From the NCBI GenBank assembly GCA_003427395.1, contig BFEA01000018.1:2187722-2251721 (forward strand): DNA of 64,000 bases. The letters run 5' to 3'. Every line of letters starts with the position of its first letter. Position 1 is the stretch's first letter. A program made the position numbers and the translations under genes. This DNA is from Chara braunii. Taxonomy: Eukaryota; Plantae; Charophyceae. Under the pieces are notes generated by a model, which saw nothing but the letters and a program-made list of their open reading frames with translations, was not told the DNA's origin and ran no database searches. This document shows positions 60,436 to 60,653 of the stretch, one piece after another.

Positions 60436-60483
60436 CCCCTGATGATGGCTTTGCAGCTGGCAGCAAAGCCGAAACCGGTCAGG
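60436..60483 (+). ncRNA. Minimal type I hammerhead ribozyme motif (family B, Penelope-like)
   Basis: CTGATGA (60439-45), T, 8-bp stem II GGCTTTGC/GCAAAGCC, GAAA, palindromic ACCGGT stem III, predicted cleavage after C60480; stem I is weak (CCC/AGG). Confidence 0.75.
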
Positions 60484-60653
60484 CCGACGCCAGTAGGCTA
60501 TGCTGTTCACTCCATTTTAACGGGAGCCTAATTTTTTCAGGCCGACGCCAGTAGGCTATGCTGTTCACTCCATTTTAACGGGAGCCTAATTTTTTCAGGC
60601 CGATGCCAGTAGGCTATGCTGTTCACTCCATTTTAACGGGAGCCTAATTTTTT
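60481..60653 (+). repeat. 58-bp tandem repeat x3 beginning at the hammerhead cleavage site
   Basis: Units start at 60481, 60539 and 60597 (AGGCCGACGCCAGTAGGCT...GAGCCTAATTTTTT) and are near identical. Confidence 0.95.

Follow-up and report, generated by a model that had tools for sequence, protein, structure and literature searches.

A Penelope-type minimal hammerhead motif bordering a 58-bp tandem array in the charophyte alga Chara braunii

The minimal type I hammerhead ribozymes of Penelope-like elements share four recurrent traits that lay outside the search descriptor of the authors who described them: an unpaired nucleotide ahead of helix II, a G10.1-C11.1 pair that is conserved, a helix II of unusual length (6-8 bp), and a palindrome comprising 15.2-16.2 and loop 3 (Cervera and de la Pena 2014, PMC4209133). 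Helix I usually comprises 4-5 bp in these forms, whereas the Drosophila virilis variant has just 2 bp and an extra 2-nt palindromic insertion in helix III (PMC4209133). Motifs of this family typically lie in the terminal repeats of RT-encoding elements or are accompanied by a second copy, either in tandem or within 50 kb. The minimal forms published in PMC4209133, and those of Lunse et al. 2017 as far as that work is related in PMC6765202, are metazoan, in contrast to the charophyte host of the locus analyzed here, and 'canonical' hammerheads have been reported from two Chlamys subclades, those of C. braunii and of spike mosses (Craig et al. 2021, PMC8557442). Hammerheads are also carried by tandem repeats such as newt satellite 2, Schistosoma Sm-alpha, and plant and animal retrozymes, in which the ribozyme is present in every unit and the unit corresponds to the RNA released from one cut to the next (PMC7229834, bioRxiv 10.64898/2026.07.22.740005).

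Within the 64-kb window, that is, the whole stretch of C. braunii DNA that was analyzed, a hammerhead core occupies positions 60439-60480 of the plus strand and consists of CTGATGA, a bulged T, a perfect 8-bp helix II, GAAA, an ACCGGT palindrome, and C17 (Table 1). The initial annotation had described a CTGATGA-T-8-bp stem II arrangement at this place, and the sequence bears it out. In hammerhead numbering, the palindrome supplies the 15.2-16.2 pair, a 2-nt palindromic loop, and then U16.1 (T60479), which together with C60480 provides a UH cleavage dinucleotide. As ACCGGU is too short for a hairpin, two copies could pair to give a 6-bp intermolecular helix III of the dimer type. The earlier assignment of the motif to the Penelope-type minimal hammerheads, with helix III formed by a palindrome, matches the published description trait by trait (PMC4209133; PMC6765202). 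Both have a core of CUGAUGA and GAAA, an unpaired nucleotide ahead of helix II, the G10.1-C11.1 pair, a long helix II (8 bp here), and a palindromic mini helix III, from which action as a dimer follows. A comparison with PMC4209133 finds every one of the four additional hallmarks together with the 2-nt palindromic insertion of the D. virilis variant, whose very short helix I may have a counterpart at this locus. Unlike the published minimal forms, helix I here amounts to 2 bp, with a mismatch on either side. The C.A mismatch that had been noted in stem I is real, and it is only one part of the defect, as two G-C pairs are all that remains of the helix, with C.A on one side and U.C on the other. 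One predicted fold also shows a 5-bp pairing further out, between 60415-60419 and 60489-60493, which is statistically not meaningful.

Table 1. Positions in the 64-kb window of the hammerhead parts, the tandem array, the competing hairpin, and the type III cores
Feature	Positions	Strand	Detail	Basis
Helix I, 5' strand (positions 2.3-2.1)	60436-60438	+	60436-60437 pair with G60483 and G60482	
C.A mismatch	60438 opposite A60481	+	Within helix I	Sequence reading
Conserved box CUGAUGA	60439-60445	+	C3-A9	Sequence, pattern and descriptor searches
Unpaired U	60446	+	Between A9 and G10.1	Hallmark of Penelope-type minimal hammerheads (PMC4209133)
Helix II hairpin	60447-60470	+	8 Watson-Crick pairs, 60447-60454 with 60463-60470	Sequence, descriptor, folding
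Helix II closing pair G10.1-C11.1	60447-60470	+	G60447-C60470; 8-nt loop	
Conserved GAAA	60471-60474	+	G12-A15.1	Sequence, pattern search
Palindrome ACCGGU	60474-60479	+	Self reverse-complementary	Sequence
C17	60480	+	Predicted scissile bond 60480/60481	Standard hammerhead numbering
Competing inactive hairpin	60438-60483	+	CCUGAU (60438-60443) with GGUCAG (60478-60483)	Folding, Z-score -2.5
Tandem array of 58-bp units	60479-60653	+	3 x 58 + 1 = 175 bases	TRF, pattern search, phase test
Inverted pair followed by T6	60494-60537	+	TAGGCT 60494-60499, AGCCTA 60525-60530, T6 60532-60537	Unit 1; recurs in units 2 and 3
Type III hammerhead core, separate family	30649-30677	-		Core pattern search
Type III hammerhead core, separate family	34036-34064	+		Core pattern search
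Type III hammerhead core, separate family	34174-34203	-		Core pattern search

It could be argued that the motif has no ribozyme ancestry at all and is simply a chance look-alike within the internal loop of an imperfect inverted repeat. Consistent with such a reading, the Rfam hammerhead models gave no match at the gathering score, nor at E values up to 10 in a 501-base search; these models expect a helix III. A plain hairpin is also the most stable predicted fold, helix I is nearly missing, and chance alone would produce a loose core pattern (CTGATGA, 8-38 nt, GAAAC) 0.39 times per window. The core pattern search found 4 such cores in the window, three of which represent a separate family of type III hammerheads, and a structural descriptor search of the window returned 60439-60480 as the only site of the minimal form. 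The full motif is a different matter, as no match combining a stem of at least 6 bp, a palindrome, and G10.1-C11.1 occurred in 60 Mb of first-order Markov sequence. By an arithmetic estimate, an equally good motif (8 Watson-Crick pairs, G10.1-C11.1, a palindrome of 2-4 nt, and UH) is expected about 1e-5 times per Mb per strand, or about 1e-6 times per window, and the motif at this locus combines all of these with the bulge, the palindromic helix III, and UC at the cleavage site. A chance origin is thus highly improbable in our estimation, and because all four of the extra Penelope-type hallmarks are present, we are confident that the motif is a real relic of the Penelope-type minimal hammerhead class, for which we infer a Penelope-like origin.

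This copy probably works poorly and has probably decayed, judging from its predicted folds. The competing hairpin buries both the hammerhead core and the cleavage site, and the computed minimum free energy of the monomer is -24.4 kcal/mol compared with -11.4 for the active-like fold, a gap of 13 kcal/mol. The dimer fares no better by the same calculation, with -33.3 kcal/mol for a double-hammerhead fold and -61.6 for the dimer minimum, and the addition of helix I to the double-hammerhead fold comes at a cost of 3.6 kcal/mol. A second copy of the minimal hammerhead with which a dimer could form was not found anywhere in the 64-kb window by blastn, blastn-short, pattern, or descriptor searches, in agreement with the initial annotation, which had stated that the ribozyme itself is not repeated.

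The surroundings of the motif differ from the context in which Penelope-like hammerheads are known, as neither a pLTR pair, an RT or endonuclease gene, nor a second ribozyme is present in the 64 kb. When 59700-61100 and four sub-pieces were searched against the window (blastn, blastn-short), only local self-matches were recovered, and a comparison of the 150 longest open frames with Pfam yielded no match to an RT or GIY-YIG domain. The window is repeat-rich and lacks recognizable coding sequence, and its U6 and U2 matches in Rfam mark it as eukaryotic. One of the 150 frames has a weak match to GIIM (group II intron maturase-specific domain, E = 7e-4) and may be an organelle-derived fragment. 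A word search of a protein collection with a 41-residue minus-strand open frame spanning the ribozyme produced no candidate, and an exact look-up of the 136-aa open frame just downstream produced no record. Exact-pattern scans of JGI metagenome contigs, which do not include this genome, gave no match to either the ribozyme or the 58-bp unit.

At the 3' end of the motif, TRF places a 58-bp array at 60479-60653; its 3.0 copies match at 99% and contain no indels. The first two units are identical, and unit 3 carries a single CpG-to-TpG change at 60604. It had been proposed that three near-identical units start at 60481, the first base 3' of the predicted scissile bond, and while the units themselves are as described, their register is borne out only approximately. 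The best phase starts at 60479 or 60480 and leaves one variable position (60604), whereas a phase from 60481 adds one mismatch, as 60654 is a G where the other units have a C. The units therefore include C17 and possibly U16.1, and the array has its left boundary 1-2 nt before the predicted scissile bond rather than at the bond itself. The microhomology between the duplication breakpoints is a single T rather than the TC suggested earlier from the junction TC/AGG, and the two internal junctions are identical, as expected of DNA duplication. The TAGGCT/AGCCTA pair and the closing T6 reported for each unit are indeed there, and the 58-nt unit folds no better than its shuffles (z -0.74). No core box is present within the 58-bp units, the sole minimal core being upstream of the array, and Rfam provided no credible identity for the 58-nt unit or its flanks, where no tRNA was detected either.

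The absence of the ribozyme from the units separates this locus from the hammerhead-bearing repeats described above. A tandem repeat accompanied by a retroelement-derived hammerhead is common to both, but the 58-bp units are ribozyme-free, so that no cut-to-cut monomer or circle would be released, and because of this the locus is neither a retrozyme nor a hammerhead satellite. The same point disposes of a small RNA circle of 58 nt, which had been put forward as one possible source of the array: such a circle needs cuts at both ends, and a unit without a ribozyme cannot cut its own 3' end.

The other route proposed for the array involves reverse transcription of the 3' cleavage product. In the form in which this could work, the hammerhead cuts its source RNA, and the 3' fragment of 58 nt, which would retain the end that the RT recognizes, still serves as a template for a Penelope-like enzyme; in a single target-primed insertion, one or two such fragments would be copied before a jump to uncut RNA, and these end-to-end jumps would build a minisatellite with the order [long copy with ribozyme][stub][stub]. 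Several features of the locus are in keeping with it. The unit spans from 1-2 nt ahead of the predicted cut to the T6 run, the longest copy is upstream, which is the order expected from successive template jumps, and 5'-truncated multicopy insertions joined head to tail are known for Penelope-like elements (PMC8557442). The array resembles those of Chlamys and Naiad in its complete shared downstream end, in the 5' truncation of the shorter copies, and in their tandem joining, but in the published cases it is kilobase elements that are arranged in partial tandems and form pLTRs, and a series of 58-bp stubs is not described among the cases in PMC8557442.

The type III hammerheads of the same window offer a useful point of reference here. 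The plus-strand copy starts at 34021, which is position 1.1, directly after a (TA)n tract and with no residue 17 kept, and it thus begins exactly at its cut, while the two minus-strand copies retain the upstream strand of helix III and the UH site. This copy counts in favor of the copying of cleaved fragments, and it also means that where a ribozyme-defined 5' end has been shown in this genome, it is exact. On hammerhead cleavage, C17 stays with the upstream fragment, and for this reason the cDNA of the downstream fragment should start at A60481. Instead, C17 is kept in every unit, and the same extra nucleotide, matching the genomic base, would have been needed at both junctions. To this may be added the 2-bp helix I together with an inactive fold that is far more stable than the active one, the lack within 64 kb of a partner copy for a dimer, the lack of an RT gene among the 150 frames compared with Pfam, the lack of an independent stub anywhere in the window (blastn, blastn-short), and the high rate at which sequence devoid of ribozymes has been duplicated in the window. 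The tests run therefore lend no support to the earlier view of the array as a record of the reverse-transcribed 3' cleavage product, and the C17 in the unit, the disfavored active fold, and the ~21 ribozyme-free minisatellites of the window all lean against it. It is disfavored, though not refuted, and we consider it unlikely that self-cleavage and end-to-end template jumps gave rise to the array.

The retained C17 would be accounted for if template switching had occurred without any cleavage. In this scenario, an uncut RNA stalls the RT at the foot of its stacked helix III and helix II, and the enzyme jumps to the 3' end of a second template; units would then start at U16.1 or C17. The best phase (60479 or 60480) does coincide with the unpaired position that immediately precedes the stable helices of this fold. 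However, the most stable predicted fold has a helix from 60483, and a stall would have been expected further downstream. The scenario also requires the same machinery and source element as copying of a cleaved fragment, neither of which is seen at the locus, and we regard it as very improbable indeed.

How much weight the position of the array should be given depends on how often such arrays arise in its vicinity. When separate TRF arrays with a period of 19 or more are counted over the whole window, the 61.6 kb of called sequence contain ~21 minisatellites whose periods range from 19 to 233 bp, or ~1 per 3 kb, which is a very high density. Examples are found at 7053-7387 (34 bp x 9.9), 8739-9233 (83/159 bp), and 53532-53751 (35 bp x 6.2). 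A comparison of the TRF list with the core pattern search places no hammerhead core beside any other of these ~21 arrays, and low-copy direct duplications occur close to the locus as well (59820-59928 with 60089-60197, 60214-60254 with 60352-60395, and 60818-60860 with 60888-60930; blastn against the window). It is clear that tandem duplication is routine in this window, and ordinary duplication is thus the default explanation. The array itself consists of near-identical head-to-tail units with short microhomology in a duplication-prone region, and it has in common with ordinary minisatellites the 1-nt microhomology and the partial extra base. What sets it apart from them is a left edge 1-2 nt away from a predicted ribozyme cut and a right edge at a T6 run.

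Taken together, these data slightly favor a Penelope-type relic whose adjoining 58 bp underwent ordinary duplication at the DNA level. The locus would then represent a solitary, probably decayed fragment of the terminal region of a Penelope-like element, or of a non-coding relative, bearing a minimal type I hammerhead of the dimer type, and the 58 bp that follow would have been tripled by tandem duplication of the DNA. Replication slippage or microhomology-mediated duplication may have provided the first step and unequal exchange the second, from two copies to three, either at the present locus or in the source copy. The proximity of the left edge of the array to the predicted cut would be coincidental, or at most aided by the stable hairpin at this position. 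There are points against ordinary duplication. The chance that an array edge falls within 3 nt of one given site is ~0.1% (21 x 3 / 61,600), the opposite edge of the unit is a T6 run that is a plausible RNA 3' end, and the multicopy head-to-tail insertions with 5' truncation reported for Penelope-like elements (Craig et al. 2021, PMC8557442) also weigh against it. For one ribozyme, the coincidence of edge and cut is striking, but by a rough extrapolation it would be expected a few times genome-wide if hammerhead copies run to thousands, and four cores occur in this window. The motif is very probably not a product of chance, but the nearness of the array junction to its cut may well be.

If the array had been built from the 3' cleavage product, the unit length of a DNA tandem repeat devoid of ribozymes would have been dictated by a ribozyme. 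It would constitute a genomic footprint of Penelope-type hammerheads cutting in vivo, with the downstream fragment copied into DNA, and would provide both a handle on the role of the ribozyme in the retrotransposition cycle and a new route to the birth of a minisatellite. On the present evidence, the locus adds a further relic to a class of ribozymes that the literature already describes for Penelope-like elements. The relic is situated beside one of many ordinary tandem duplications, and its main use would be as a query for a genome-wide survey.

Several other features of the window are worth recording. Upstream of the motif, a ~110-118-bp tRNA-like segment is present in two direct copies, 59813-59928 and 60082-60197, which are 97% identical; it contains box A-like and box B-like stretches and may be the head of a SINE, and neither ARAGORN nor Rfam recognized either copy. 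A Pol III reading in which the tRNA-like head at 60082-60197 drives the ribozyme and T6 serves as the terminator was rejected on account of intervening T4 runs, for example at 60238-60241. Further upstream, a dispersed repeat with 82% identity between 59690-59811 and 23940-24055 includes a T-arm-like GCAGTTCGAAAC stretch. Just downstream of the array, 60818-60860 and 60888-60930 form a partial duplication with a 70-bp period (93%), and further on there are pure A24 (61025-61048) and A28 (61842-61869) runs that could be the tails of retro-copies. A candidate target-site duplication, AGGACAAGG, with one copy at ~59697 and the other following the A24 run at 61048, was rejected as well, as its upstream copy lies inside the dispersed repeat that also occurs near 23950. 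An assembly gap (a run of N at 62986-63705) begins 2.3 kb downstream of the locus, and the local assembly may be imperfect as a result. Finally, Rfam identified five U6 snRNA matches in the window, at 12473-12572 (+), 13026-13127 (-), 16328-16439 (+), 27569-27666 (-), and 46225-46329 (-), along with a partial U2 match at 17151-17237 (-), and this density of snRNAs in 64 kb suggests that they are retro-copied, possibly as template-switch products of resident retroelements.
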